From NCBI GenBank assembly GCA_964035545.1, contig OZ037765.1, positions 15,014,698-15,078,697 on the forward strand: a stretch of DNA of 64,000 bases. The letters run 5' to 3'. Of this stretch, positions 1 to 20,939 are shown piece by piece; the stretch's first letter is position 1; each line of letters opens with the position of its first letter. The position numbers and the translations under genes were made by a program. This DNA is from Bugula neritina. Its lineage: Eukaryota > Animalia > Bryozoa. A model generated the notes under the pieces. That model did no database searches and had not been told where the DNA came from. It saw only the letters and a list, made by a program, of their open reading frames with translations.

Positions 1-3000
1 ACTGCAACATACTGCAACATACTGAAATACACTGTAACCTACTGAAATACACTGCAACATACTACAACATACTGAAATACACTGTAACATTATGAATTAC
101 ACAGCAACACATTGAAATATACTGCAATATACCGAAATATATGGTAAACAACTGAAATATACTGCAAAAATACTGAAATATACTGTAACATACTGAAAGA
201 TACTGCAACATACTGAAATACACTGTAACATACTGAAATAAACGGCAACATACTGCAACATACTGTATTACACTGTAACATCTTGAAATACACTGCAACA
301 CATGTAAAGTTACTGCAACATACTGAAACATACTGCAACATACTGAAATATACTGCAACATATCGAAGTATATCGTAATATACGGACATGCACTGTAACA
401 TACTGAAACATACTGAAACATACTGAAACATACTGAAACATACTGAAATATACTGGAACGTATCGAAATATACTTCAACATACTAAAATACACTGCAACA
501 TACTGCACCATACTGAAATACACTGCAACACATTGAAGTATACTGTAATATACAGAAATGTACTGTAACATACTGAAACATACGTCAACATACTGAAATG
601 TACTGCAACATGTCGAACTATACTGCAAGACACTGAAACATACTGCAACATACTGAAACATACTGCGACATATCGAAGTATATCATAATATACGGACATG
701 CACTGTAACATACTGAAACATACTGAAACATACTGAAATATACTGGAACATACCAAAATATACTTCAACATATTAAAATATACTGCAACATACTGAAACA
801 CACTGTAACATACTGAAATACACTGCAACACATCGGAATAAACTGCAACATACCTAAATATACGGTAATATACTCAAATTTGCTGTTCACATTGAAAAAC
901 ACTGCAACATACTGAAATTTGCTGTAGCACAGTGAAATTCAGTGCAACCCACTGAAATATAGTGTAATATACGGAAATGTACTTTAACATACTGAAATAT
1001 ACTGCAAAATACTGAAATACCCTGTAACATACTGAAATACACTGTGACACACTGAAATATACTGCAACACACCGCAATAAACTGAAACACGCTGTAACAT
1101 ACTGAAATACACTGCAACATACTACAACATATTGAAATACACTGCAACACATTGAAATATACTGCAACACACTGAAACATACGGCAACATATTGAAATAT
1201 ACTGCAACACATTGAAATATACTGCAACATACCGAAAATAACTGCAACTGTGCAATATAATGAAATATACTGCAAAAATACTGAATTGTACTGCAACAAT
1301 TTGAAAGTTACTGTATGATACTGACATATACTGAAACACACTGAAACATACTGCGAGATACTGCAACATACTGAAACACACTATAACATACTGAAATACA
1401 CTGCAACATACTGCAACATACTGCAACATACTGAATTACACTGTAACATATTGAAATACACTGCAATACATTGAAATTTACTGCAACACACTGAAACATA
1501 CTGCAACATACTGAAATGTACTGCAACATATCGAAGTATATTGTAATATACGGACATGTACTGTAACATACTGAAACATACTGAAACATACTGAAACATA
1601 CTGAAATATACTTCAACATACTGAAATATACTGCAACATACTGCAACATACTGAAATGCACTGTAACATACTGAAACACACTGCAACACATTGAAACAAA
1701 CTGCAACAAACCTAAATATACGGTAATATACTGAAATATACTGTAACACATTGAAAAACACTGCAAGATACTGAACTATACTGCAACACACTGAAATACA
1801 CTGTAATATACTGAATTAAACTGCAACATACTGCAACATACTGAAATAAGCTGTAACATATTGAAATACACTACAACACATCGTAATATACTGCAACATA
1901 CTGAACCATACGGCAACATACTGAAATACACTGCAACACATCGGAATAAATTGCAACATACCTAAATATACGGTAATATACTGAAATATACTGTACACAT
2001 TGAAAAACACTGCAACATACTGAAATTTGCTGTAGCACAATGAAATTCTGTGCAACCCACTGAAATGTAGTGTAATATACGGAAATGTACTTTAACATAC
2101 TGAAACATACTGCAACACATTGACATATACTGCAACACACTGAAACATACGGCAACATATTGAAATATACTGCAACACATTGAAACATACTGCAACACAC
2201 TGAAACATACGGCAACATACTGAAATATACTGCAACATACTGCAACATACTGAAATACACTGTAATATACTGAATTAAACTGCAACACATTGTAATATAC
2301 TGCAACATACTGAATCATACGGCAACATACTGAAATATACTGCAACACATTGAAATATACTGCAACATATTGAAATATGCTGTAGCACCCTGAAATTCAC
2401 TGCAACTTACTGAAATATAGTGTAATATACGGAATTGTACTGTAACCTACTGAAATATACTGTAACACACTGAAATATGCAGTCACATACTGAAATATAC
2501 TGTAAATTATTAGAATTATACTGCAACATACTGCAACATACTGAAATACACTGTAACCTACTGATATACACTGCAATATACTACAACATACTGAAATACA
2601 CTGTAACATATTGAAATACGCTGCAACACATTGAAATATACTGCAAAATACCGAAATATATGGTAAACTGCTGAAATATACCGTAACACATCAAAAAATA
2701 CTGCAACATACTGAAATATACTGTAACACACTGAAATATACTGCAACTTACTGAAATACATTGTAACATACTGAAATATACTGCAACATACTGCAACATA
2801 CTGAAATACACTGTAACATACTGATATACACTGCTATATACTACAACATACTGAAATACACTGTAACATATTGAAATACGCTGCAAAACATTGAAATATA
2901 CTGTAACATACCGAAATATATAGTAAACTACTGAAATATACTGTAACACATCGAAAAATACTGCAACATACTGAAATATACTGTAACACACTGAAATATA

Positions 3001-6000
3001 CTGCAACATACTGAAATACATTGTAACATACTGAAATATACTGCAACATACTGAAATACACTGTAACATGCTGAAATACACTGCAACATACTGCAACATA
3101 CTGAAATACATTGGAACATATTGAAACACACTACAACACATTGAAATATACTGCAACACACTGAAACATACAGCAACACACTGAAACATACAGCAACATT
3201 CTGAAATACACTGTGACATATTGAAATACACTGCAACATACTGCAACATACTGAAACATACTACAACATACTGAAATACACTGTAACATATTGAAGTGCA
3301 CTGCAACACATTGAAATATACTGCAACACACTGAAACATACGGCAACATACTGAAGTATACTGCAACACATTGAAAAATACTGCAACATACCAAAATATA
3401 TGGTAAACTACTGAAATATACTGTAACACATTGAAAAAAACTGCAACATACTGAAATATACTGTAACACACTGAAATATACTGCAAAATACTGAAATACA
3501 CTGTAACATACTGAAATACACTGTAACACACTGAAATATACTGCAACACACTGCAATATACTGAAACACGCTGTAACATACTGAAATACACTGCAACATA
3601 CTACATTATATTGAAATACACTGCAACACATTGAAATATACTGCAACACAATGAAACATACGGCAACATACTGAAACATAGTGCGACACATTGAAATATA
3701 CTGCAACATACTGAAACATGCTGTAGCATACTGAAATACACTGCAACACATTGAAGTATACTGTAATATACACAAATGTACTGTAACATACAGAAACATA
3801 CGTCAACATACTGAAATGTACTGCAACATGCTGAACTATACTGCAACATACTGAAATACACTGTAATATACTGAATTAAACTGCAACATACTGCAACATA
3901 CTGAAATAAGCTGTAGCATACTGAAATACATTGCAGCACACTGAAGCGTCCTGCAATATGCAGAAACGTACTGCAACATACTGAAATATACCGCAACAAA
4001 CCGAAATTTATGGTATACTGAAATATGTTGCAAACTAGTAAAATGTACTGCAACATACCGAAAATAACTGCAACTGTGCAATATAATGAAATATACTGCA
4101 AAAATACTGAAATATACTGCAACAATTTGAAAGTTACTGTATGATACTGACATATACTGAAACACATTGAAACATACTGCAAGATACTGCAACATACTGA
4201 AATACACTATAACATACTGAAATACACTGCAACATACTGCAACATACTGCAACACACTGCAACATACTGAATTACACTGTAACATATTGAAGTACACTGC
4301 AATACATTGAAATTTACTGCACCACACTGAAACATACAGCAACATACTGAAATACACTGTGACATACTGAAATACACTGCAACATACTGCAACATACTGC
4401 AACATACTGCAACATACTGCAACATACTGAAATACACTGTAACATATTGAAATACACTGCAACGCATTGAAATATACTGCAACACAATGAAACATACGGC
4501 AACATACTGAAACATAGTGCGACACATTGAAATATACTGCAACATACTGAAACATGCTGTAGCATACTGAAGTACACTGCAACACATTGAAGTATACTGT
4601 AATATACAGAAATGTACTGTCACATACTGAAACATACGTCAACATACTGAAATGTACTGCAACATGCTGAACTATACTGCAACATACTGAAATATACTGC
4701 AACGTATTGAAGTATATTGTAATATACGGACATCTACTGTAACATACTGAAACATACTTAAACATACTGAAATATACTTCAACAAACTGAAATATACTGC
4801 AACATACTGCAACATACTGAAATACACTGTAACATACTGAAACACACTGCAACACATCGGAATAAACTGCAACATACCTAAATATACGGTAATATACTGA
4901 AATATACTGTTCACATTGAAAAACACTGCAACATACTGAAATTTGCTGTAGCACAGTGAAATTCACTGCAACCCACTGAAATATAGTGTAATATACGGAA
5001 ATGTATTTTAACATACTGAAATATACTGTAACACACTGGAATATACTGTCACATACTGAAATACACTGTAAAATACTGAAATATATTGCAACATAGTGCA
5101 ACATACTGAAATACACTGTAACCTACTGATATACACTGCAATATACTACAACATACTGAAATACACTGTAGCGTATTGAAATACGCTGCAACACATTGAA
5201 ATATACTGCAACATACCGAAATATATGGTAAACTACTGAAATATACTGTATCACATTGAAAAATACTGCAACATACTGAAATATGCTGTAACACACTGAA
5301 ATATACTGCAAAATACTGAAATACACTGTAACATACTGAAATATACTGCAACATACTGAAATACACTGTAACATACTGAAATATACTGCAACATACTGCA
5401 ACATACTGAAATACACTGTAACGTACTGAAATACACAGCAACATACTGCAACATACTGCAACATACTGAAATACGCTGTAACATATTGAATTACACTGCA
5501 ACACATTGAAATATACTGCAACACACTGAAACATACGGCAACATACTGAAATATACTGCAAAACATTGAAATATACTGCTACATACTGAAACATGCTGTA
5601 GCATACTGAAATACACTGCAACACACTGAAGTATACTGTAATATACAGAAATGTACTGTAACATACTGAAACATACGTCAACATACTGAAATGTACTCCA
5701 ACATGCTGAACTATACTGCAACATACTGAAATACACTGTAATATACTGAATTAAACCGCAACACATTGTAATATACTGCAACATACTGAATCATACAGCA
5801 ACATACTGAAATATACTGCATCACATTTAAATATACTGCAACATATTGAAATATGCTGTAGCACCCTGAAATTCACTGCAACTTACTGAAATATAGTGTA
5901 ATATACGGAATAGTACTGTAACATACTGAAATATACTGTAACACACTGAAATATGCTGTCACATACTCAAATATACTGTAAATTACTAGTATTATACTGC

Positions 6001-9000
6001 AACATACTGCAACATACTGAAATACACTGTAACCTACTGATATACACTGCAATATACTACAACATACTGAAATACACTGTAACATATTGAAATACGCTGC
6101 AACACATTGAAATATACTGCAACATACCGAAATATAGGGTAAACTACTGAAATATACCGTAACACGTCAAAAAATACTGCAACATACTGAAATATACTGT
6201 AACACACTGAAACATACTGCAATTTACTGAAATACATTGTAACATACTGAAATATACTGCAACATACTGCAACATACTGAATTACACTGTAACATACTGA
6301 TATACACTGCTATATACTACAACATACTGAAATACACTGTAACATATTGAAATACGCTGCAACACATTGAAATATACTGCAACATACCGAAATATATAGT
6401 AAACTACTGAAATATACTGTAACACATCGAAATATACTGCAACATACTGCAACATAATGAAATATACTATAACACATTGGAATAAACTGCAAAATACTGA
6501 AATATACTGTAACATACTGAAACATACTGCAACATACCGAAATATACTGTAACATACTGAAATATACTGCAAGATACTACAACGTACTGAAATACACTGT
6601 AACATACTGAAATACACTGCAACATACTGCGACATACTGAAATACATTGGAACATATTGAAACACACTACAACACATTGAAATATACTGCAACACACTGA
6701 AACATACAGCAACATACTGAAATATACTGCAACATAGTTAACTATAATGCAAGATACTGCAACATTCTGAAATACACTGTGACATATTGAAATACACTGC
6801 AACATACTGCAACATACTGCAACATACTGAAATACACTGTAACATATTGAAGTGCACTGCAACACATTGAAATATACTGCAACACACTGAAACATACGGC
6901 AACATACTGAAGTGTACTGCAACACATTGAAAAATACTGCAACATACCGAAATATATGGTAAACTACTGAAACATACTGTAACACATTGAAAAAAACTGC
7001 AACATACTGAAATATACTGTAACACACTGAAATATACTGCAAAATACTGAAATACACTGTAACATACTGAAATACACTGTAACACACTGAAATATACTGC
7101 AACACACCGCAATATACTGAAACACGCTGTAACATACTGAAATACACTGCAACATACTACAACATATTGAAATACACTGCAACACATTGAAATATACTGC
7201 AACACACTGAAACATACGACAACATATTGAAATATACTGCAACACATTGAAATATACTGCAACATACCGAAAATAACTGCAACTGTGCAATATAATGAAA
7301 TATACTGCAAAAATACTGAAATGTACTGCAACAATTTGAAAGTTACTGTATGATACTGACATATACTGAAACACACTGAAACATACTGCAAGATACTGCA
7401 ACATACTGAAACACATTATAACATACTGAAATACACTGCAACATACCGCAACATACTGCAACATACTGAATTACACTGTAACATATTGAAATACACTGCA
7501 ATACATTGAAATTTACTGCAACACACTGAAACATACTGCAACATACTGAAATATACTGCAACATATCGAAGTATATTGTAATATACGGACATGTACTGTA
7601 ACATACTGAAACATACTGAAACATACTGAAACATACTGAAACATACTGAAATATACTTCAACATACTGAAATATACTGCAACATACTGCAACATACTGAA
7701 ATACACTGTAACATACTGAAACACACTGCAACACATTGAAATAAACTGCAACAGACCTAAATATACGGTAATGTACTGAAATATACTGTAACACATTGAA
7801 AAACACTGCAAGATACTGAAATATGCTGTAGCACACTGAAATACACTGCAACATACTGAAATACACTGTAACCTACTGATATACACTGCAATATACTACA
7901 ACATACTGAAATACACTGTAGCATATTGAAATACGCTGCAACACATTGAAATATACTGCAACACACTGAAGGATACGGCAACATACTGAAATATACTGCG
8001 ACACATTGAAATATACTGCAACATACTGAAACATGCTGTAGCATACTGAAATATACTGTAACACACTGTAAAATACTGCAACATACTGCAACATACTGAC
8101 ATACACTGGAACATACTGAAATACACTGCAACATACTACAACATACTGAAATACACTGTACCCTACTGAAATATGCTGTAGCACACTGAAATATACTGCA
8201 ACATACTGAAATATAATGCAAGTTACTACAACATACTGAAATACACTGTGACATACTGAGATACACTGCAACATACTGCAACATACTGCAACATACTGAA
8301 ATACACTGTAACCTACTGAAATACACTGCAACATACTACAACATACTGAAATACACTGTAACATTATGAATTACACTGCAACACATTGAAAAATACTGCA
8401 ACACACTGAAACATACGGCAACATACTTAAATATATGGTAAACAACTGAAATATACTGTAACACATCGAAAAATACTGCAACATACTGAAATATACTGTA
8501 ACACACTGAAATATACTGCAACATAATAAAATACATTGTAACATACTGAGGTATACTGCAACATACTGCAACATACTGAAATACACTGTAACATACTGAA
8601 ATACACTGCAACATACTGCAACATACTGAAATACATTGGAACATATTGAAACACACTACAACACATTAAAATATACTGCAACACACTGAAACATACGGCA
8701 ACATACTGAAATATACTGCGACACATTGAAATATACTGCAACATACTGAAATATGCTGTAGCATACTGAAATATACTGTAACACACTGTAATATACTGCA
8801 ACATACTGGAACATACTGACATACACTGGAACATACTGAAATACACTCCAACATACTACAACATACTGAAATACACTGTAACCTACTGAAATATGCTGTA
8901 GCACACTGAAATATACTGCAACATACTGAAATAAAATGAAAGTTACTACAACATACTGAAATACACTGTGACATACTGAGATACACTGCAACATACTGCA

Positions 9001-12000
9001 ACATACTGCAACCTACTGCAACATACTGAAATACACTGTAACAGACTGAAATGTACTGTAACACACTGACATATACTGCAACACATTGAAATATACCGCA
9101 ACATACTGAAATATGCTGTAGCACACTGAAATACACTGCAACTCACTATAATATAGTGTAATATACAGAAATGTACTGTAACATACTGAAATATACTGTA
9201 ACATACTGAAATCTACTGCAACATACTGAAGTACACTGCAACATACTGCAACATACTGAAATACACTGTAACATATTGAAATACACGACAACACATTGAA
9301 ATATACTGCAACACACCGAAGGATACGGCGACATACTGAAATATACTGCGACACATTGAAATATACTGCAACATACTGAAATATGCTGTAGCATACTGAA
9401 ATATACTGTAACACACTGTAAAATACTGCAACATACTGCAACATACTGACATACACTGGAACATACTGAAATACACTGCAACATACTACAACATACTGAA
9501 ATACACTGTACCCTACTGAAATATGCTGTAGCACACTGAAACTTACTGCAACATACTGAAATATAATGCAAGTTACTACAACATACTGAAATACACTGTG
9601 ACATACTGAGATACACTGCAACATACTGCAACATACTGCAACATACTGAAATACACTGTAACCTACTGAAATACACTGCAACATACTACAACATACTGAA
9701 ATACACTGTAACATTATGAATTACACTGCAACACATTGAAAAATACTGCAACACACTGAAACATACGGCAACATACTGAAATACACTGTAACATATTGAA
9801 ATACACGACAACACATTGAAATATACTGCAACACACTGAAGGATACGGCAACATACTGAAATATACTGCGACACATTGAAATATACTGCAACATACTGAA
9901 ATATGCTGTAGCATACTGAAATATACTGTAACACACTGTAAAATACTGCAACATACTGCAACATACTGACATACACTGGAACATACTGAAATACACTGCA
10001 ACATACTACAACATACTGAAATACACTGTACCCTACTGAAATATGCTGTAGCACACTGAAATATACTGCAACATACTGAAATATAATGCAAGTTACTACA
10101 ACATACTGAAATACACTGTGACATACTGAGACACACTGCAACATACTGCAACATACTGCAACATACTGAAATACACTGTAACCTACTGAAATACACTGCA
10201 ACATACTACAACATACTGAAATACACTGTAACATTATGAATTACACTGCAACACATTGAAAAATACTGCAACACACTGAAACATACGGCAACATACTTAA
10301 ATATATGGTAAACAACTGAAATATACTGTAACACATCGAAAAATACTGCAACATACTGAAATATACTGTATCACACTGAAATATACTGCAACATAATAAA
10401 ATACATTGTAACATACTGAGGTATACTGCAACATACTGCAACATACTGAAATACACTGTAACATACTGAAATACACTGCAACATACTGCAACATACTGAA
10501 ATACATTGGAACATATTGAAACACACTACAACACATTAAAATATACTGCAACACACTGAAACATACGGCAACGTACTGAAATATACTGCGACACATTGAA
10601 ATATACTGCAACATACTGAAACATGCTGTAGCATACTGAAATACACTGCAACACACTGAAGTATACTGTAATATACAGAAATGTTCTGTAACATACTGAA
10701 AGGTACGTCAACATACTGAAATGTACTCCAACGTGCTGAACTATACTGTAACATACTGAAATACACTGTAATATACTGAATTAAACTGCAACATACTGCA
10801 ACATACAGAAATAAGCTGTAACATATTGAAATACACCACAACATATTGTAATATACTGCAACATACTGACCCATACGGCAACATACTGAAATATACTGCA
10901 ACACATTGAATCATACTGCAACATAGTCAAATATAATGCAAGATACTGTAACATTCTGAAAAACACTGTGACATACTGAAATACACTGCATCATACTGCA
11001 ACATACTGCAACATACTGCAACATACTGAAATACACTGCAACACATTGAAGTAAACCGCAACATACTTAAATATACGGTAACATACTGAAATATACTGTA
11101 ACTCATTGAAAAACATCGCAACATACTGAAACATACTGAAATATGCTGTAGCACACTGAAATACACCGCAGTTCAATAAAAAATAGTGTAATATACGGAA
11201 ATGTACCGTAACATACTGAAATATACTGTAACAGACTGAAATGTACTGTAACAAACTGAAATATACTGCAACATGCTGAAATACACTGTAACATAATGAA
11301 ATATACTGCAACATACTGCAACATACCGAATTACACTGTAACAAACTGAAATACACTCCAACATACTACAACATACTGAAATACACTGTAACATATTGAA
11401 ATACACCGCAACACATTGAAATATACTGCAACATACCGAAATATATGGTAAACTACTGAACTATACTGTAACACATTGAAACTTACCGCAAAATACTAAA
11501 ATACACTGCAACACACTGAAGTATACTGTAATATATAGAAATGTACTGTAAAGTACTTAAACATACGACAACATACCAAAAAACATACTGCAATATACTG
11601 AATTACACTGCAATATCCTGAAATATACTTCAACATACTGAAACATACCTAAAAACATTGAAATATACTGAAATACAGTGTAGGATATTGAAATACACTG
11701 CAACAATTTGGAATATACAGCAACATACCGAAATATATGGTAACCTACTGAAATATGTTGCAAACTACTGAAATATACTGCAACATACTGCAACATAATG
11801 AAATATACTATAACACATTGGAATAAACTGCAAAATACTGAAATATACTGTAACATACTGAAACATACTGCAACATACCGAAATATACTGTAACATACTG
11901 AAATATACTGCAAGATACTGCAATATACTGAAATACACTGTAACATACTGAAATACACTGCAACATACTGCAACATACTGACATACACTGGAACATACTG

Positions 12001-12411
12001 AAATACACTGCAACATACTACAACATACTGAAATACACTGTAACCTACTGAAATATGCTGTAGCACACTGAAATATACTGCAACATACTGAAATATAATG
12101 CAAGTTACTACAACATACTGAAATACACTGTGACATACTGAAATACACTGCAACATACTGCAAGAAACTGCAACATACTGAAATACACTGTAACATATTG
12201 AAATACACTGTATAACCTTGAAATATACTGCAACACACTGAAGGATACGGCAACGTACTGAAATATACTGTGACACATTTAAATGTACTGCAACATACTG
12301 AAATATGCTGTAGCATACTGAAATAGACTGTAACACACTGTAATATACTGCAACATACTGCAACATACTGACATATACTGGAACATACTGAAATAAACTC
12401 CAACATACTAC
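1..12411. repeat. 10-bp-monomer satellite array, left of the retroelement (ACTGCAACAT / ACTGAAATAY / ACTGTAACAY variants)
   Basis: A continuous 10-bp period is visible in every line. GAAAT-type and GYAAC-type monomers mostly alternate, giving a 20-bp sub-period. The array is more heterogeneous in the first ~8 kb and probably continues beyond the window start. Confidence 0.99.
9251..10290. repeat. 520-bp tandem duplication inside the satellite
   Basis: ATACACGACA at 9281/9801, GGATACGG at 9321/9841, CCCTACTGAA at 9511/10031, ACATTATGAA at 9711/10231. Confidence 0.85.
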
Positions 12412-12815
12412 TAGCCAACTTGGCAACAGGTTTTCGAGTTTATTAACTGTCAAATCGTACCCTATAAAATGGGAAACATTAGAAATTGTATAAATAAGTA
12501 GTCACAATATAAATCAAAATTCAGAGGAACACTATGAATATTACAGAACCAAAAAATTGACATGAACTATTGTAATTCTAATAAACTTACAATATTGATG
12601 CGTGGATAAAAATCTTAGCCATCACAATACCGAAACCGATAGTTTATTCATACAAAGAGTGTAAATATGGCGGTTTGATCATGATACACTGACTCATGCA
12701 GTACAGTGAATGAACTAGCTCTGCCAGCTAATAGTAGCTTTGGTGAAAGCTTTTGAAGCTTGAAAGCTTTAATGATTGGCTGCCTGCCAATACTTCTGGG
12801 TGGCATACCAATACA
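12407..12815 (-). repeat. 3' LTR, 409 bp, missing its terminal ~7 bp (TAAAACA)
   Basis: No mismatch to 18135-18543 in a by-eye comparison. The outermost ACTAC (12407-12411) is shared with the flanking satellite. Confidence 0.92.
12439..12444 (-). terminator. Polyadenylation signal AATAAA in the 3' LTR (5' LTR copy at 18167-18172)
   Basis: AATAAA lies ~40 nt upstream of the LTR 3' end on the sense strand. A second AATAAA is at 12643-12648. Confidence 0.6.
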
Positions 12816-12876
12816 TCGGTGGGGTCGAATTGTTTGGCAGATACTATTCTGACAAATATTGATAAATTATGTAAAT

Positions 12877-12904
12877 CAAAACAAACAAAACAAACAAAAC
12901 AAAA
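12877..12904 (+). repeat. (CAAAA/CAAA)n simple repeat in the element 3' UTR; U-rich on the sense strand
   Basis: caaaacaaacaaaacaaacaaaacaaaa. Confidence 0.85.
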
Positions 12905-13044
12905 TAGGATCAGTCACAGACCATGAAATTCTTGCACCAATCCGCTGACCCCTCCGCGCACCAGCCCGTCCCCCGAAAAATGGTTGAATGCAGACCCCTC
13001 CAGCGACACGAGCGTACACGCGGCCAAGAAGGTAGATCAGTCAT

Positions 13045-16000
13045 TTATGGGTTCACTTCAGTTAATAAAGCCAACCTATGCACGCTGCGGGTTATGATAT
13101 TGTCTTTACAGCCTACATAGTCCCTCAGTTTCCCTGCTACCTTATAGTTTTTGTAGGAAAAGGCTACTTTTCTTACTACGCCATCCTTGCTCGGATATAC
13201 TTGATGTACTCGAGCTAGTTTATACTGATTACGCAGCTGATTTGGATCCATAACCACTACAACATCTCCCACCTGAAAGTTTCGTCTTGGGGTATGCCAC
13301 TTTTGGTGATGAATCAGTGTGGGTGCATACAATTCGGTCCACTTCCGCCAGAAGTCATCTGAGACTGTATTTACCAAAGCCAGTCGCCCCCTTAAGGAGT
13401 AGTCTGTATTCCAGTTGCCAGGATTCTTGATGAAGGGTCGTCCAATAAGTTGACAGTTAGGTGTTAATATGTTGATCTCAGAGTCTGAATCTGGCAGTAA
13501 TCCCAATGGCCTTTCATTTAGTGTGTTTGCAGCTTCAGTGCAGATTGTGAGAAATTCTGTAGGTGAAAGCCGGCGGTTGCTCTTTGAAAATGTGAAACAT
13601 CTCTTGACAGCCTTTATGAGTGATTCAGCAGCGCCCTGATACCAGGGGCTGTCACCAGGTCCAAATTCCCATTGCAACCCATTTTCTGCACTGGTTTTCT
13701 TGATAGAATCTTTGTCCATGCGTCTCCACATATCTTTGAGTTCTTTTTCTGCTCCAGCTAACTGTGTTCCAGGATCAGAATAAATCTTGGATGGCCAGCC
13801 ACGAATGTTGACGAATCGAGTTAATGCCAACAGGAAAGAATCACTGTCATATCCGAAAACTGCTTCGATGTGTGCTGCTCGTGAACTGATGTCTGTGAAT
13901 ATTACTTCATAAGCTTTGCTCGAAGTTCTAGTCTGTTTTTCTCCTCTCACAATATACGGACCAAAAAGATCTATCATTACATTGTTGAATGGCGGTCCGG
14001 TCGTTAGTCGTTCTGTAGGAAGACTTCCCATCAGTTGATCAGTAAAGCGAGGTTGTTTGAGTCGACACATTTGGCATGATGTTACTATGCCCCTAGCAAC
14101 CTTAGATCCTTGCATAGTCCAAAACTCTTCTCGGAATCTTGCGAGTGTTGCATCTCGGCCACGGTGATAGCTGTTTATGTGTGCCTGCCGCATTGCCAAG
14201 TAAGTAAAGTAGTGAGAGGTGGGAAAGATTGATTGCGTGTGCGTTTTAATCGCTGTCATGGGGTTATGCCTTAGGAGTCTACTGCCTACTATCCATACTT
14301 CACTCTCTGTCTTAATGGGGTGAAGCCTTGTGTATTTCTCTTTAATCTTGCTCAACTCAGAATCTATAGTGCGTTGTACCTGCTTCAGTAAGTAGAGTTT
14401 GGTCTGCCGTAGATCTTCCACGGTGATGAGATCAGATTGGATTCCCTTAAAACTTTTGTATTTGAAGATGTTGCAAACTCGAGCTATTGTCCATGTTAGA
14501 CTCTTGAGGCTGCTGAAATTTTCATATTTAATAAATGATTGGACTTCTGTTGATGCAGTGACAGTGTAAACTATTTTCTTCTCTCCAAAGACAAGCTCAT
14601 TCGAGTCAGATGGCGATTTTATATCCCATTGATCCTCAGGCAGATAGAGAAAATTTGGGCCTCTCCACCATTCACTCTCAGGTCCAATGTCATTGACAGG
14701 CTTCCCTCTTGTAAGCCAATCTGCTGTGTTTTCCTTGCCACTTACCCAGTGCCAGCAGCTCATATCCCCATTGGTTGCTCCCTGAATTTCTCCAATGCGT
14801 ACACCTTCGTAAACATGAAACCTTGTTGACTTCTTTTGGAACATCTTGAGCACCGTTTTAGAATTGATAAGCTGATAAACTTTCTCAAACTCATAGCGCA
14901 TTTCAGTCTTAATAACTTGTCTGCCTCTCTTTGACCATACGGCCGCATTGAGTTCTAGTTGAGGAATCTTGAGTTGTTGTTTTATGGGTGCTATACGACA
15001 TTTAGCTGTAGCTTTGTTTACCCCTTTAGCAGTCGCTTTAGATTCTGCCCTCTCATTGGCCGGAACAGGCGTGGATTGTGTGATAGAGGTACTGCTAGTA
15101 AATTCATACTTTCTTTTAATCTCTACAGACATGGACATAGAGTCATTGACTTCTAAAGATCTGTTCAACTGTCCAGAACCGATTTGTCCTGCAGACTCAG
15201 TGTCTGGGTCTCCCGGGCTCTGTAAAGGGTCGGAATCATCGGCTGACTCAATCATACCACATTCAGTGGCTATAGTATGTGATTCACCATAATTTATAAT
15301 AGTCTGAGGTCTTGAAAATGACTTTGCAAACTGACTGGGAGATGCGTCGGGACTATTGACACTGTAAGTTGGCGTAGAAACTGTAGACAATTCAAAATCA
15401 CAACTGTTGAGCGTGTCGTTGTGTATGCTTTGAGTGAATTCAACTTCCTCTAACTTCTCATGCGCCATGGTAGCCTGTACATGAAAAGATGAGGATGGAA
15501 GTGTAGAAAAGTTGCTAAGGGTAGGGTGTGATCCCTGCACACACAGTCCAAAGGGTCCGGAATATACATAGAGGTGAGGTCCTGCTTGATCAACTTGGTG
15601 TTTTGGATGCAATCCAAGAAGATCGTTACCAATTAGCAGGTCGATGGGTCCCGTCTTCTTCAATAGCTTGTGAGTATCTACTTTCGGGAAGAGAGATTTG
15701 AGGATGTTTGCATCAAGTGGCCTGTTGATAGCCCCTGTGAGTTTCCGAAGGCTGTAAGCTAAAATCGAAAAGGTCCTTCCCTTTGGAGTTTGTAACTTTA
15801 CTTCATAAATAGTAGAAGTTTCGCTAACTTCATGTTCACCAAGTGTGTTCATTTCCAAATTCACCTTATCTATCTGTCGCGCACCCCACGCTTTAGCGGC
15901 TCTCTCCGATATGAATGAAGCATTGGATCCGCCGTCAAAGAATATAATAGCTGTATGAGATGTACCCACTACTTGGGCCTGCTGAATGGCAAATACTGTA

Positions 16001-18069
16001 GCATTTCCTGGATGATTGTGCGCTCCATGATTGAGAGACACACGGACCGTGGTGCTAACAGCAGACGCTTCAGAATTCTCGTTACTCTTGTGCTTAATTT
16101 GATCAGCTCTTGCTTTATTCTTGTTGGTATTACAATTGGTATGTGTATTAGTTTCAGCTGATTTGATGCACAATAATACATGGTGGGTTGTTTTATCACA
16201 GACTGAACAAGGGGTTCGGAAATTTGGACAGCACTTGGGCTTATGGGCACCCAAGCACCTAGCACATAGAGAATTAGTTTTTATTAACTTGTATCTTTCA
16301 TCTACAGACAACGCCAAGAAATTTCTGCACTCAACAAGACAATGACGCTCACTGCGATGAATAAAACAGTAATTCTCACTATCAATGGTTTTGCTATTAT
16401 TAGTAGACCTGTTACTACTAGACTTTGGGCCACTGCTTTCAGTGTGGAACGCTTTCACCTTCTGTTTATGCATACTGGAGGACTGCGGGTTTACGGTTTC
16501 TATGCGTCTGAGGGCTATCTGCCGTTCTTGCTCTAGAAACCTCATGAGGTGTGGGAATGGCTTGATTCTCTCCTCGTGAGTAAGTATGTGAAAGTGTCTA
16601 TCCCAGTCCCGTCTAATGCTTGTAGGTAATAGGTTTGCAAGAGTATCGACCTGTGGCAGCATAACAGTTTGCAACAGTCCCACTTCACCGAGTTGGCTGT
16701 ACGAACTTTCTACTGCATTGGCCATTTTGACGAGTTCTCGTGCATCGCCTTCTTTTACTGGCTTTAGTTCTTGTAGATTGTTGAAGACTGCTTGCACACT
16801 CATACTAGGATCATTGTAGACCTCTTCTAATCTACACATCATTCTCTCATAAGCTTGAGGCTGAGTTGCAAAGATTGGCTGAACCATCTCCAGAGCTTCG
16901 CCTGTGAGAAATTTTTTTAATTCACAAGCCCTATCGACATCATCGTAAAACATAGTGGCATACCTTAGCCACACTGACCTAAATTCCGGCCAATGGTATC
17001 TGGTGCCGTTAAATGGCTTGGGTTGTGAATGAGTTTTATGTATAGATGAATTGAAGTTATTTCCACCTGTATGTCTAGAGTCATAACTTATTTGACTAGT
17101 TCCATTAGGATAGCTATCATATGCATTGACAACCGAGGAAGTTGCGCCGCGAATCAAGGATTCCGAATGAGCTGCACGATCAGGACTACCATGTAGATCA
17201 CGTACTGAGAACGTAGAAAAACGAACATCTCTGACATTGGTACTTGCTATGACACCTGGATTTGATGCCAAAGCTTCACCGGATGTGTGATCTTCCCGTA
17301 GTACCTGCCTATCACTACCACTTGCTGTGATACCTGGATTTGGTGCAAGAGTAGCCTCATGTGTGCTAGGGTGTGATCTAGGAGAAAACAACTGACCCGA
17401 CGCGACCATAGTCGATGCATGACCCGCGCCGCTCGAAGGTGACCCCCCACCCATACCGCTCTCCACGAGACCGGACTGGACCACGGACGGATCAGATTCA
17501 CGGTGTTCGAAATTCATGCTCTGTGACTGAGCCCTTGACATAAGAGCAAACTTAGACATACAATAATCTAAAGATAAAATAACTTCGTCTAATTCTAATA
17601 ATAAATCAGAAAAACCTATGGTATCTGCCAAACTTTCTGAAAGAGCTACACATTTCCTATGATGTTCAGTGATAAGAGTATTGTCAGTACAATCAGCAAC
17701 TAATCCATTGGCTTTCTTAATTGCTAAAATAAGGCTGTGCTTGATTTTATAGAATTTGCTATGCCAAGTATTACAGTCAGAAATAGCTTTGTCATAACTA
17801 GCCTTTACAGCTTGATAGTACTCTACTGGACTCATCTTATTAACATAAGCAATGTCTTCCATAGACTCATCTGATGAAACGTATTCCAAAAAGTCATAAT
17901 GGATAGTTAGAAACTCTTGATATGTAGATTCAAGCTGAGATCGCAGGCATTCCACTTGTATAGAGTTGCTACTAGAGATTGCTGACTCTATGAGATTAGT
18001 TAGCATTGTTACCTTAGACCTCAGAGTAGTACGTTGCTTCTTGAGATTAACTATGTCCTGTCGGTCCAT
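13045..18069 (-). CDS. Gag-PR-(no RT)-partial RNase H-integrase polyprotein, 1674 aa from the first ATG
   Basis: The frame is open from 18123 to 13045. The ORF track starts at TTG 18123; the first ATG is at 18069. Motifs in order: KPFNG..WPEF..W (DUF1759-like Gag), three Cys/His knuckles, FFDGGSNASFI..IDLLIGND (protease), AKCRIAP..LEL..NTAD (RNase H part), H-H-CQMC, IDLFGP, YSDPGTQL, GAAESLIK (integrase), FWRKW..GDVVVV..DGVVRKV..RSVHRL (DUF5641-like tail). Confidence 0.93.
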   Translation of the reverse strand: MDRQDIVNLKKQRTTLRSKVTMLTNLIESAISSSNSIQVECLRSQLESTYQEFLTIHYDFLEYVSSDESMEDIAYVNKMSPVEYYQAVKASYDKAISDCNTWHSKFYKIKHSLILAIKKANGLVADCTDNTLITEHHRKCVALSESLADTIGFSDLLLELDEVILSLDYCMSKFALMSRAQSQSMNFEHRESDPSVVQSGLVESGMGGGSPSSGAGHASTMVASGQLFSPRSHPSTHEATLAPNPGITASGSDRQVLREDHTSGEALASNPGVIASTNVRDVRFSTFSVRDLHGSPDRAAHSESLIRGATSSVVNAYDSYPNGTSQISYDSRHTGGNNFNSSIHKTHSQPKPFNGTRYHWPEFRSVWLRYATMFYDDVDRACELKKFLTGEALEMVQPIFATQPQAYERMMCRLEEVYNDPSMSVQAVFNNLQELKPVKEGDARELVKMANAVESSYSQLGEVGLLQTVMLPQVDTLANLLPTSIRRDWDRHFHILTHEERIKPFPHLMRFLEQERQIALRRIETVNPQSSSMHKQKVKAFHTESSGPKSSSNRSTNNSKTIDSENYCFIHRSERHCLVECRNFLALSVDERYKLIKTNSLCARCLGAHKPKCCPNFRTPCSVCDKTTHHVLLCIKSAETNTHTNCNTNKNKARADQIKHKSNENSEASAVSTTVRVSLNHGAHNHPGNATVFAIQQAQVVGTSHTAIIFFDGGSNASFISERAAKAWGARQIDKVNLEMNTLGEHEVSETSTIYEVKLQTPKGRTFSILAYSLRKLTGAINRPLDANILKSLFPKVDTHKLLKKTGPIDLLIGNDLLGLHPKHQVDQAGPHLYVYSGPFGLCVQGSHPTLSNFSTLPSSSFHVQATMAHEKLEEVEFTQSIHNDTLNSCDFELSTVSTPTYSVNSPDASPSQFAKSFSRPQTIINYGESHTIATECGMIESADDSDPLQSPGDPDTESAGQIGSGQLNRSLEVNDSMSMSVEIKRKYEFTSSTSITQSTPVPANERAESKATAKGVNKATAKCRIAPIKQQLKIPQLELNAAVWSKRGRQVIKTEMRYEFEKVYQLINSKTVLKMFQKKSTRFHVYEGVRIGEIQGATNGDMSCWHWVSGKENTADWLTRGKPVNDIGPESEWWRGPNFLYLPEDQWDIKSPSDSNELVFGEKKIVYTVTASTEVQSFIKYENFSSLKSLTWTIARVCNIFKYKSFKGIQSDLITVEDLRQTKLYLLKQVQRTIDSELSKIKEKYTRLHPIKTESEVWIVGSRLLRHNPMTAIKTHTQSIFPTSHYFTYLAMRQAHINSYHRGRDATLARFREEFWTMQGSKVARGIVTSCQMCRLKQPRFTDQLMGSLPTERLTTGPPFNNVMIDLFGPYIVRGEKQTRTSSKAYEVIFTDISSRAAHIEAVFGYDSDSFLLALTRFVNIRGWPSKIYSDPGTQLAGAEKELKDMWRRMDKDSIKKTSAENGLQWEFGPGDSPWYQGAAESLIKAVKRCFTFSKSNRRLSPTEFLTICTEAANTLNERPLGLLPDSDSEINILTPNCQLIGRPFIKNPGNWNTDYSLRGRLALVNTVSDDFWRKWTELYAPTLIHHQKWHTPRRNFQVGDVVVVMDPNQLRNQYKLARVHQVYPSKDGVVRKVAFSYKNYKVAGKLRDYVGCKDNIITRSVHRLALLTEVNP
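13048..14190 (-). other. Integrase with HHCC zinc finger, DDE core and C-terminal domain
   Basis: H at 14179-81 and 14164-66, C at 14074-76 and 14065-67. D at 13969-71, D at 13774-76, E at 13624-26. The D-x49-E spacing is long, as is usual for BEL/Pao. Confidence 0.92.
14700..15006 (-). other. Truncated RNase H (C-terminal part only), probably inactive
   Basis: Begins at AKCRIAP, so the upstream F-x-D-A/G-S motif with the first catalytic Asp is absent. The usual x-D-S motif reads INS (AAT at 14863-14865). The E of LEL and the D of NTAD (14719-14721) are retained. Confidence 0.8.
15530..16000 (-). other. Aspartic protease domain (DUF1758-like), catalytic Asp at 15934-15936
   Basis: AIIFFDGGSNASFIS, then IDLLIGND and GPFGLCVQG. 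The triad is DGG rather than the usual DSG/DTG. Confidence 0.85.
16168..16368 (-). other. Triple zinc-knuckle nucleocapsid region
   Basis: CFIHRSERHCLVEC, CARCLGAHKPKCC and CSVCDKTTHHVLLC. Three knuckles are characteristic of BEL/Pao Gag. Confidence 0.88.
16520..17020 (-). other. Gag capsid-like domain (DUF1759-type), approximate bounds
   Basis: KPFNGTRYHWPEFRSVW...LKKFLTGEALEMV...AYERMMCRLEEVY...LPTSIRRDW...LMRFLEQE fits the BEL/Pao Gag pattern. Recognised by eye, not by HMM. Confidence 0.8.
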
Positions 18070-18189
18070 GTCAGCCTCAGCAATATTGGTACTGTATCGG
18101 TTTGTGTTTGTGTCTGGTTGCAAGATATGTTTTAACTACTAGCCAACTTGGCAACAGGTTTTCGAGTTTATTAACTGTCAAATCGTACC

Positions 18190-18318
18190 CTATAAAATGG
18201 GAAACATTAGAAATTGTATAAATAAGTAGTCACAATATAAATCAAAATTCAGAGGAACACTATGAATATTACAGAACCAAAAAATTGACATGAACTATTG
18301 TAATTCTAATAAACTTAC
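18190..18318 (-). other. Predicted 129-nt spliceosomal intron in the LTR (same position in the 3' LTR: 12462-12590)
   Basis: Perfect GTAAGT donor, TTCTAAT branch-point-like motif and TTTCCCATTTTATAG acceptor, all on the element's sense strand. Confidence 0.6.
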
Positions 18319-18500
18319 AATATTGATGCGTGGATAAAAATCTTAGCCATCACAATACCGAAACCGATAGTTTATTCATACAAAGAGTGTAAATATGGCG
18401 GTTTGATCATGATACACTGACTCATGCAGTACAGTGAATGAACTAGCTCTGCCAGCTAATAGTAGCTTTGGTGAAAGCTTTTGAAGCTTGAAAGCTTTAA

Positions 18501-18509
18501 TGATTGGCT
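18501..18509 (-). promoter_or_regulatory. CCAAT box in U3 of the 5' LTR
   Basis: AGCCAATCA matches the NF-Y consensus RRCCAATSR and lies ~35 nt inside the LTR 5' end. Confidence 0.4.
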
Positions 18510-20939
18510 GCCTGCCAATACTTCTGGGTGGCATACCAATACAAACATACTGAAATACACTGTAACCTACTGAAATATGCTGTAGCACACTGAAATATAC
18601 TGCAACATACTGAAATATAATGCAAGTAACTACAACATACTGAAATACACTGTGACATACTGAGATACACTGCAACATACTGCAACATACTGAAATACAC
18701 TGTAACAGACTGAAATGTACTGTAACACACTGAAATATACTGCAACATGCTGAAATACACTGTAACATACTGAAATATACTGCAACATACTGCAACATAC
18801 CGAATTACACTGTAACAAACTGAAATACACTCCAACATACTACAACATACTGAAATACACTACAACACATTGAAGTAAACCTCAACATACTTAAATATAC
18901 GGTAACATACTGAAATATACTGTAACTCATTGAAAAACATTGCAACATACTGAAACATACTGAAATATGCTGTAGCACACTGAAATACACCGCAGTTCAA
19001 TAAAAAATAGTGTAATATACGGAAATGTACCGTAACATACTGAAATATACTGTAACAGACTGAAATGTACTGTAACAAACTGAAATATACTGCAACATGC
19101 TGAAATACACTGTAACATAATGAAATATACTCCAACACACTGCAACATACCGAATTACACTGTAACAAACTGAAATACACTCCAACATACTACAACATAC
19201 TGAAATACACTGTAACATATTGAAATACACCGCAACACATTGAAATATACTGCAACATACCGAAATATATGGTAAACTACTGAATTATACTGTAACACAT
19301 TGAAACTTACCGCAAAATACTAAAATACACTGCAACACACTGAAGTATACTGTAATATATAGAAATGTACTGTAAAATACTTAAACATACGACAACATAC
19401 CAAAAAACATACTGCAACATACTGCAATATCCTGAAATATACTTCAACATACTGAAACATACCTAAAAACATTGAAATATACTGAAATACAGTGTAGGAT
19501 ATTGAAATACACTGCAACAATTTGGAATATACAGCAACATACCGAAATATATGGTAACCTACTGAAATATGTTGCAAACTACTGAAATATACTGCAACAT
19601 ACTGCAACATAATGAAATATACTATAACACATTGGAATAAACTGCAAAATACTGAAATATACTGTAACATACTGAAACATACTGCAACATACCGAAATAT
19701 ACTGTAACATACTGAAATATACTGCAAGATACTGCAATATACTGAAATACACTGTAACCTACTGAAATACACTGCAACATACTACAACATACTGAAATAC
19801 ACTGTAACATTATGAATTACACGGCAACACATTGAAAAATACTGCAACACACTGAAACATACGGCAACATACTTAAATATATGGTAAACAGCTGAAATAT
19901 ACTGTAACACATCGAAAAATACTGCAACATACTGAAATATACTGTATCACACTGAAATATACTGCAACATAATAAAATACATTGTAACATACTGAGGTAC
20001 ACTGCAACATACTGCAACATACTGAAATACACTGTGACATACTGAGATACACTGCAACATACTGCAACATACTGCAACCTACTGCAACATACTGAAATAC
20101 ACTGTAACAGACTGAAATGTACTGTAACACACTGACATATACTGCAACACATTGAAATATACCGCAACATACTGAAATATGCTGTAGCACACTGAAATAC
20201 ACTGCAACTCACTATAATATAGTGTAATATACAGAAATGTACTGTAACATACTGAAATATACTGTAACATACTGAAATCTACTGCAACATACTGAAGTAC
20301 ACTGCAACATACTGCAACATACTGAAATACACTGTAACATATTGAAATACACGACAACACATTGAAATATACTGCAACACACTGAAGGATACGGCGACAT
20401 ACTGAAATATACTGCGACACATTGAAATATACTGCAACATACTGAAATACGCTGTAGCATACTGAAATATACTGTAACACACTGTAAAATACTGCAACAT
20501 ACTGCAACATACTGACATACACTGGAACATACTGAAATACACTGCAACATACTACAACATACTGAAATACACTGTACCCTACTGAAATATGCTGTAGCAC
20601 ACTGAAATATACTGCAACATACTGAAATATAATGCAAGTTACTACAACATACTGAAATACACTGTGACATACTGAGATACACTGCAACATACTGCAACAT
20701 ACTGCAACATACTGAAATACACTGTAACCTACTGAAATACACTGCGACATACTACAACATACTGAAATACACTGTAACATTATGAATTACACTGCAACAC
20801 ATTGAAAAATACTGCAACACACTGAAACATACGGCAACATACTGAAATATATGGTAAACAACTGAAATATACTGTAATACATCGAAAAATACTGCAACAT
20901 ACTGAAATATACTGTAACACACTGAAATATACTGCAACA

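Follow-up and report, generated by a model that had tools for sequence, protein, structure and literature searches.

How does a retrotransposon that encodes no reverse transcriptase (RT) come to have identical long terminal repeats (LTRs) and a family of copies? BEL/Pao elements carry the pol order protease (PR), RT, RNase H (RH) and integrase (IN), and identical LTRs arise from reverse transcription. Here, we describe a BEL/Pao element at 12407-18543 of a 64,000-nucleotide stretch of the Bugula neritina genome (GenBank assembly GCA_964035545.1, contig OZ037765.1, positions 15,014,698 to 15,078,697; hereafter the window), its copies and its relatives. It is the only LTR element in the window, and its long frame lies on the minus strand. 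The element very probably represents a long-lived, recently active semi-autonomous sublineage that borrows RT from sister copies. Positions are those of the window unless marked el, in which case they follow the strand of the element itself (el x = window 18543-x+1). Copies were searched for in the window's own 216-Mb genome, whose contigs are called C1, C2, C3 etc., and labelled copies and relatives are numbered L001-L039.

The sequence-only reading of the window had reported one 1674-aa open reading frame free of stops and frameshifts, and this frame indeed runs uninterrupted from an ATG at 18069 to a stop at 13045, with the following parts:

13045-18069, minus strand: single frame of 1674 aa plus stop, comprising Gag, PR, filler, RNase H remnant and IN
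16594-17013, minus strand: Gag core (DUF1759; Pfam E=2e-8)
16168-16266, minus strand: two zinc knuckles, CX2CX3HX4C and a second Cys/His cluster, with invariant Cys/His columns
15445-15969, minus strand: aspartic protease (FFDGGSN) with its C-terminal linker to the left breakpoint, from a weak DUF1758 match and alignment
15007-15444, minus strand: filler of 438 bp (146 aa), replacing the relatives' 1524 bp (RT and the RNase H N-terminus)
14704-15006, minus strand: RNase H remnant, the C-terminal third of the Peptidase_A17 profile
13048-14253, minus strand: integrase, from Pfam and invariant H, H, C, C, D, D columns
14050-14196, minus strand: integrase HHCC
13609-13986, minus strand: integrase D,D,E core
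13141-13383, minus strand: DUF5641 integrase C-terminal domain (Pfam)

Pfam matches in the frame are DUF1759, DUF1758 (weak), Integrase_H2C2 and DUF5641, and the domain set of BEL/Pao, which the relatives have as well, is present (DUF1759 Gag, DUF1758 PR, a Peptidase_A17 region, H2C2 and DDE integrase, and DUF5641). RVT_1 has no match in the 1674-aa frame, and the match to Peptidase_A17 is confined to 109-159 of the 162 profile positions. By way of control, the closest full-length relatives were scanned with this Pfam library and have a complete A17 match and a weak RVT_1 match at the expected place; these RVT_1 scores fall under the gathering cut-off, making RVT_1 a weak detector in this clade. 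The window element was also aligned, as protein, with five full-length relatives (49-69% identical; the nearest named proteins, from the bryozoan Watersipora subatra, are 49% identical). The relatives have about 560 residues separating the protease from the C-terminus of RNase H, among which are a Cys/His knuckle, the full series of RT motifs (YVDDIVDS being one) and LSDGS of the RNase H N-terminus. The element's own sequence there is unalignable, and every RT motif (YVDD included) and LSDGS are missing. Within RNase H, DSETVL has become NSKTVL (Asp to Asn), and the region of the first catalytic Asp is gone. The CCHC knuckles, the PR Asp, the IN HHCC and the IN D,D,E all fall in invariant columns. 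The motifs first read from the sequence in Gag, the knuckle, protease and integrase are thus borne out by Pfam and alignment, as are the missing RT and an RNase H that has lost its first Asp and carries Asn at another site. The complete order PR-RT-RH-IN is absent here, with RT and the RNase H N-terminus missing, and is present in sister copies, which makes the element a derivative by deletion, and not an autonomous member, of a BEL/Pao family.

This structure recurs across the genome. A whole-element search recovered at least 14 full-length copies (96-100% identity, nine contigs) plus deleted copies, and a 1.4-kb probe spanning the PR-filler-RH junction (el 2500-3900) is contiguous at 26 loci (93-100% identity), compared with three close RT-bearing copies. 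About 28 RT-less loci give A17 profile positions 107/112-162 only. Perfect 5-bp target-site duplications (TSDs) and distinct flanks are found for 12 full-length RT-less copies (L002-L012 and L014), and TSDs of their own also border a copy with spliced LTRs (L015) and two further-deleted derivatives (L020 and L021). With these individual TSDs, the copies cannot stem from assembly collapse, which had been raised as an objection, or from segmental duplication. LTR pairs have no mismatches in 7 copies and one mismatch in 4, internal regions differ by at most 4% among copies, and their tree is star-like; the full 1674-aa frame is kept in at least 8 of the 15 copies read. Since several diverged RT-less sublineages have each inserted recently, the RT-less form has long replicated as such, in line with the earlier proposal of a propagating lineage over a one-off copy. 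Among L001-L014, the LTR and 3' untranslated region (UTR) diverge by 1.2-1.7%, compared with about 5.7% at synonymous sites, which suggests constraint or homogenisation of these cis regions.

RT-bearing sisters of the element are present in the same genome. At three loci (C5:1939990-1947212, C8:38062-44946 and C2:26279323-26286137) the junction probe splits into its first 599 bp and last 364 bp (95-96% identity), and the two halves lie 1524 bp apart, compared with 438 bp in the window element. This length gap, 1086 bp or 362 aa, is exactly what separates their 2058-aa frame from the 1696-codon stop-to-stop frame of the window element. Inside the extra segment, the RT-RNase H query, taken from relative P0001, matches at 69% (query 3-501 of 501, stop-free) at these three loci only and fills 1488 of the 1524 extra bp. 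All three give a complete A17 profile and are 95-96% identical to the window element across RH-IN. The copy on C5 differs structurally only by the swap of 1524 for 438 bp: its 5' LTR is 100% identical to that of the window element, its 3' UTR and LTR 99%, its collinear stretch from the primer-binding site (PBS) through Gag and PR 97%, and its RH-IN 96%. RT-bearing elements measure 7.27 kb with a 2058-aa frame, and RT-less ones 6.18 kb. The C8 copy has lost 338 bp from its internal region, close to the 5' end, the C2 copy carries a 136-aa integrase deletion, and a fourth locus (C3:14162508-14167053) has another one-off deletion. RT-less copies outnumber RT-bearing ones by about 8:1. The suggestion that RT is borrowed from a helper gains support from these copies, with their 99-100% identical LTRs and collinear Gag-PR and RH-IN. 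Furthermore, the identical 136-aa IN deletion occurs in an RT-less copy (L019, C3:3051590-3057308) and in the RT-bearing C2 copy. The simplest explanation is that RT-less and RT-bearing genomes have recombined, in which case the two would be co-packaged.

Five other intact BEL/Pao families of the genome (L031-L035) were considered as parents and rejected, being merely 27-32% identical. The other BEL/Pao families are intact, with frames of 1909-2123 aa and LTR pairs 99.9-100% identical, and the 2123-aa frame is found at no fewer than seven loci with identical A17 scores, which indicates broad recent BEL/Pao activity in the genome.

The RT-less form did not arise by a simple deletion of RT, as 1524 bp have been exchanged for 438 bp of unrelated open sequence. 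This filler has no in-frame stops, compared with 5-18 in each of the other five frames, and is rich in Ser, Thr, Glu, Asp and Pro. It has no Pfam match, and blastx in any frame finds no similarity to 89 relatives; together these rule out a scrambled RT. Nor was a single-copy source, as expected of a captured host gene, found in the genome. Between RT-less sublineages the filler retains 82-86% amino-acid identity, with a synonymous divergence of 7.6%. Genome searches place it in 27 family loci and otherwise only at about six loci of a second repeat family:

C1:35204873-35208112
C5:8585200-8587208
C6:6328979-6331541
C2:28632566-28632957
C9:370961-377411
C298:139704-140104

In this second family the filler is longer (by about 520 bp) and 61-84% identical, with 61-72% amino-acid identity at the six or so loci, Gag-PR is 85-93% identical to that of the window element, and the neighbourhood yielded no RH-IN. 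This family may have donated the filler or may be an older non-autonomous lineage. We infer a replacement, for which the simplest route would be template switching between RNAs packaged together.

Selection was measured among the RT-less copies. The 14 aligned copies (L001-L014) have a strong transition bias (transition/transversion ratio, ts/tv, 3.7), so the neutral expectation was recomputed, and omega was corrected for kappa using variants common to at least two copies. Over the whole frame pN/pS is 0.39 (14 copies). Omega is 0.21 in the Gag core (p=5e-5), 0.04 in PR (p=3e-5; 11 synonymous to 1 non-synonymous shared variants) and 0.29 in IN (p=5e-4). Constraint is not significant in the filler (omega 0.74), the RNase H stump (about 0.59-0.96) or the Gag N-terminus (0.92) once the observed ts/tv is allowed for; uncorrected dN/dS had exaggerated constraint. 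The Gag core, PR and IN are under purifying selection within RT-less copies. This is the pattern expected if the Gag, PR and IN of RT-less elements work and the middle of the frame serves just as an open linker.

The ends of the element and its replication signals are arranged as follows:

18093-18543, minus strand: 5' LTR (el 1-451), TGTATTGG...CCGATACA, with AATAAA at LTR 168 and 372
18190-18318, minus strand: intron in the 5' LTR, 129 nt, GTAAGT...TTTTATAG, LTR 226-354
18081-18092, minus strand: PBS-like site, 12 nt, GTACCAATATTG, adjoining the true LTR end
12816-13044, minus strand: 3' UTR, its last 14 nt forming a C-rich box
12816-12829, minus strand: C-rich box TTCGACCCCACCGA, at the expected position of the polypurine tract (PPT)
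12407-12815, minus strand: 3' LTR, cut short at 409 of 451 bp, without the final 42 bp and their ...ACA end
12462-12590, minus strand: LTR intron in the 3' LTR
18544-18548, minus strand: upstream flank ATGTT, in satellite, with the same pentamer at 12402-12406

The repeats at 12407-12815 and 18135-18543 are 100% identical over 409 bp, as first reported, though the true LTR of the family is 451 bp long (TGT...ACA). In 12 other, full-length copies the 3' repeat extends 42 bp further, ends in ...CCGATACA and is followed by a perfect 5-bp TSD matching the 5 bp upstream. The 3' LTR in the window ends at LTR 409, about 37 nt past the AATAAA at 372 and near the predicted poly(A) site; the missing 42 bp correspond approximately to U5, yet ATGTT stands on both flanks. 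The loss may stem from a cDNA that ended aberrantly, from an error in the assembly or from a deletion reaching into the periodic satellite, and the ATGTT flanks may be a TSD or may reflect satellite periodicity. With the 3' LTR truncated and ATGTT recurrent in the satellite, the TSD of the window copy is ambiguous, and a plain TSD reading was dropped. The satellite (10/20 bp, with a ACTGAAATAC-like unit) makes up nearly the whole window (1-12399 and 18544-63953) and also hosts a second copy of the family (L008, contig C192, TSD AGTAT).

Because the LTR is really 451 bp long, the position at which a PBS had first been sought, and reported absent, fell inside the LTR. No TGG follows the true LTR end either, hence the PBS is of a non-tRNA type by the TGG criterion, but a 12-nt non-canonical PBS-like site does adjoin that end. 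It is the exact reverse complement of the spliced LTR junction CAATATT/GGTAC (slash at the splice; LTR 226-354 removed). Pairing of this kind extends over 12 nt in the window element, 12 nt in L031 and 13 nt in L034, and was reached by 0, 1 and 0 of 300 shuffles, respectively. No variation is seen in the PBS 12-mer across 14 copies, and the base that follows it is tri-allelic. Exact removal of the LTR intron is found in three genomic copies (L015, L016 and C6:1030178-1030741), of which L015 (1276-7196) is a complete RT-less copy with intron-less LTR, TSD ATAAG and the full frame; splicing of the intron therefore takes place in vivo, and RNA freed of it has been retrotransposed. In L036 and L037, two relatives found in other assemblies, the LTR complement is unbroken, at 14 nt and at least 18 nt. 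In the closest public relative, L038, the complement is split by a diverged 167-nt intron; one PBS base and its exon-edge partner have both changed (an A/T swap), so that PBS and splice junction covary, with 13 pairs kept. PBS-splice-junction complementarity is thus found in four element families (the window family, L031, L034 and L038). Splicing is needed for pairing both in this genome and in L038, where an intron interrupts the complement. Folding backs the PBS pairing solely for an assumed start near LTR 195-210. A TGG-type PBS is also missing from the other intact BEL/Pao families of the genome.

At the other end, the earlier report of no PPT was right in that no purine run precedes the 3' LTR of the window element, and it overlooked the C-rich box in that place. 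This box precedes the 3' LTR in all five clade elements (the window family, L036, L037, L038 and L039), RT-bearing and RT-less members alike. It is CGACCCCACC-like at L036:9224-9245, L037:9468-9489 and in the 3' trailers of L038 and L039, across at least four assemblies; the other BEL/Pao families of the genome have normal purine tracts. Pairing of the C-rich box with G-rich boxes in the 3' UTR is suggestive in the window element, L038 and L039 (reached by 6, 2 and 9 of 200 shuffles) but absent in L036, and was rejected as not robust. Since the oddities of PBS and PPT are common to RT-bearing clade members, they are not part of the RT loss, and tying the two together was mistaken; priming is non-standard, as supposed, and no less so in the relatives with RT. 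In Tf1, the RNA's first 11 bases pair with the PBS and an RNase H cut frees the primer (PMC7175516, PMC6317226). In Tf1/Sushi-type elements, and also in the Tcn1 and TAR/Houba copia lineages, the PBS complements the element's own 5' RNA and not a tRNA. In the window family, too, the PBS is complementary to the element's own leader, though unlike in Tf1 the complement is completed by splicing. Minus-strand priming in the clade is thus probably Tf1-type self-priming, judging from the complementarity in four families, the copies with the LTR intron exactly removed and the compensatory change in L038, and likely a new priming mode for a BEL/Pao clade.

We propose that, in a single old event, 438 bp of unrelated open sequence would have taken the place of 1524 bp coding for RT and for RNase H's N-terminal half, so that the RNase H stump and IN became joined in frame to Gag-PR. 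The RT-less element would have retained the family's LTRs, leader, PBS and 3' signals, and would be transcribed and packaged like its parent, providing its own Gag, protease and integrase. RT and RNase H would come from the few RT-bearing sisters, whose 2058-aa polyprotein would co-assemble into the same particles. Splicing of the 5' LTR intron copy would make the primer, whose release cut would need the helper's RNase H, and progeny LTRs would copy the 3' intron copy, so that the intron would usually be kept.

Several points weigh against this account. The relation of the RT-bearing copies to the RT-less ones is known through coordinates, identities and frame lengths only. Recombination with RT-bearing lineages could account for part of the low omega values. 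That the element is transcribed, packaged and active today is a prediction from sequence, and the window copy's own 3' LTR is without its last 42 bp. Moreover, RT-less derivatives without the IN core, with a 1440-aa frame, have transposed too (L020, C1:29376270-29381638, TSD AAATC; L021, C4:20303773-20309144, TSD GTCAT). It follows that a supply of IN in trans can suffice and that there is no strict need for it in cis. A further IN-core-deleted derivative lies at C3:21528430-21532589. All derivatives seen stay in frame (2058, 1922, 1696, 1540 and 1440 aa).

A more specific version of the account, in which the element is an obligate RT-parasite whose Gag, PR and IN prefer their own RNA, combined with splice-dependent self-priming new to retroelements, is offered tentatively, as a serious possibility. 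The RT-less copies might instead be mobilised wholly in trans, their own Gag, PR and IN doing nothing for them, with the open frame and low dN/dS due to recombination or to stop avoidance (nonsense-mediated decay, translation-coupled packaging). Such passive parasitism agrees with the transposition, frame kept, of IN-core-less derivatives at two or three loci, with the frame-keeping of every deletion derivative seen, with a filler and RNase H stump that stay open without amino-acid constraint, and with the shared IN deletion in RT-less and RT-bearing backgrounds, which suggests recombination. We nevertheless consider it unlikely: frame-keeping alone does not predict a synonymous bias specific to the Gag core, PR and IN; at about 8:1, most recombination partners would themselves be RT-less; and in mouse IAP I-delta-1 the fusion protein is described as acting in cis (PMC6466679).

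The source of RT might also lie elsewhere, in another intact BEL/Pao family of the genome (frames of 1909-2123 aa) and not in the same-LTR sisters. These families are numerous and intact with many identical copies, and at least L031 and L034 share the style of pairing between PBS and LTR splice junction; however, they are 27-32% identical in RT and RH-IN and differ in LTRs, PBS and PPT, and co-assembly of 97%-identical Gag together with identical cis signals points to the sisters, which makes an outside helper improbable. Equally, there might be no lineage at all, if RT-less copies were remade repeatedly from RT-bearing genomes by splicing or at a template-switch hot spot and were dead on arrival. 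The family does retrotranspose spliced RNA, as its intron-less LTR copies attest, but the filler is missing from RT-bearing copies and, with the RT query filling 1488 of the 1524 extra bp, cannot derive from them by deletion or splicing; its divergence between sublineages also speaks against recurrent origin, for which we see very little chance. Least credible is that the element is a one-off decayed copy or an assembly artefact, or that the filler hides a cryptic divergent RT. RVT_1 is admittedly a weak detector in the clade, and the window copy sits in satellite, where assemblies are fragile, but the same structure is found at 26 loci on at least nine contigs, the insertions read have individual TSDs, and a filler of 146 aa, compositionally biased, without similarity to 89 relatives and evolving near-neutrally, is a poor candidate for an RT.

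With RT borrowing from sister copies as the preferred explanation, the family can be compared with known systems. It had been put forward as a candidate for an undescribed system, but the IAP I-delta-1 proviruses of the mouse, which are class II endogenous retroviruses, are a close analogue; their fusion protein is reported to have an effect in cis (PMC6466679, citing Saito et al. 2008). Each of the two derives from an internal deletion that gave a new in-frame fusion polyprotein, and each is non-autonomous and relies, in the window family by our reading, on full-length relatives that share its LTR. In each, the deleted form is more numerous than the full-length one or inserts more often. The window family has the in-frame fusion frame, multiple independent insertions of the deleted form and, by coordinates and identity only, a partner with the same LTR and cis signals in the genome. 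The cis effect, reported for I-delta-1 (PMC6466679), would be deduced from selection in the window family. I-delta-1 loses part of gag and pol (1.9 kb) and the window family only RT and half of RNase H; unlike in I-delta-1, foreign sequence replaces RT, and PR and IN are intact and constrained. Superfamily and host also differ (BEL/Pao in an invertebrate, IAP in the mouse), and the window family is known from sequence alone.

Among plant elements, TR-GAG, the 'semi-autonomous' elements retaining Gag/PR, and BARE-2 have partial coding capacity, and a partner supplies the rest (PMC13570524). TR-GAG has Gag only and BARE-2 is without Gag expression, whereas PR and IN are complete in the window family; Pol remnants in the plant semi-autonomous families are described as decayed, and here IN and PR are under purifying selection. 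TR-GAG, LARD and TRIM elements keep no pol enzymes, in contrast to the complete PR and IN found here. LARD, TRIM, ETn/MusD and Dasheng/RIRE2 form parasite-master pairs with common LTR, PBS and PPT, as here, but those parasites have zero coding capacity, unlike the window family. Canonical BEL/Pao elements share with it the Pfam signature, the single frame, TGT...ACA ends and 5-bp TSDs. They have the RT and RNase H N-terminus that it lacks, and differ from the whole clade, RT-bearing members included, in which the PBS is of a non-tRNA type and a C-rich box stands at the PPT. In the literature searched, neither self-priming in BEL/Pao nor a BEL/Pao lineage lacking only RT was found, and a blank of this kind is not proof of absence.

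To our knowledge, nearly all parasites among LTR parasite-master pairs are empty or hold Gag only. Parasitism in trans is known, and loss of RT only, with PR and IN under selection, is an unusual form of it. This lineage appears to have shed just the polymerase module, while capsid, protease and integrase were selected through long diversification, and it offers a BEL/Pao counterpart to IAP I-delta-1, the one well-studied animal case. The RT-less and RT-bearing pair offers a naturally occurring test, protein by protein, of cis preference in retroelements and, if the RT-parasite reading is true, would be a natural dissection of which retroelement functions are required in cis and which can be borrowed. 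Splice-dependent priming, if confirmed, would tie retroelement replication to host splicing.

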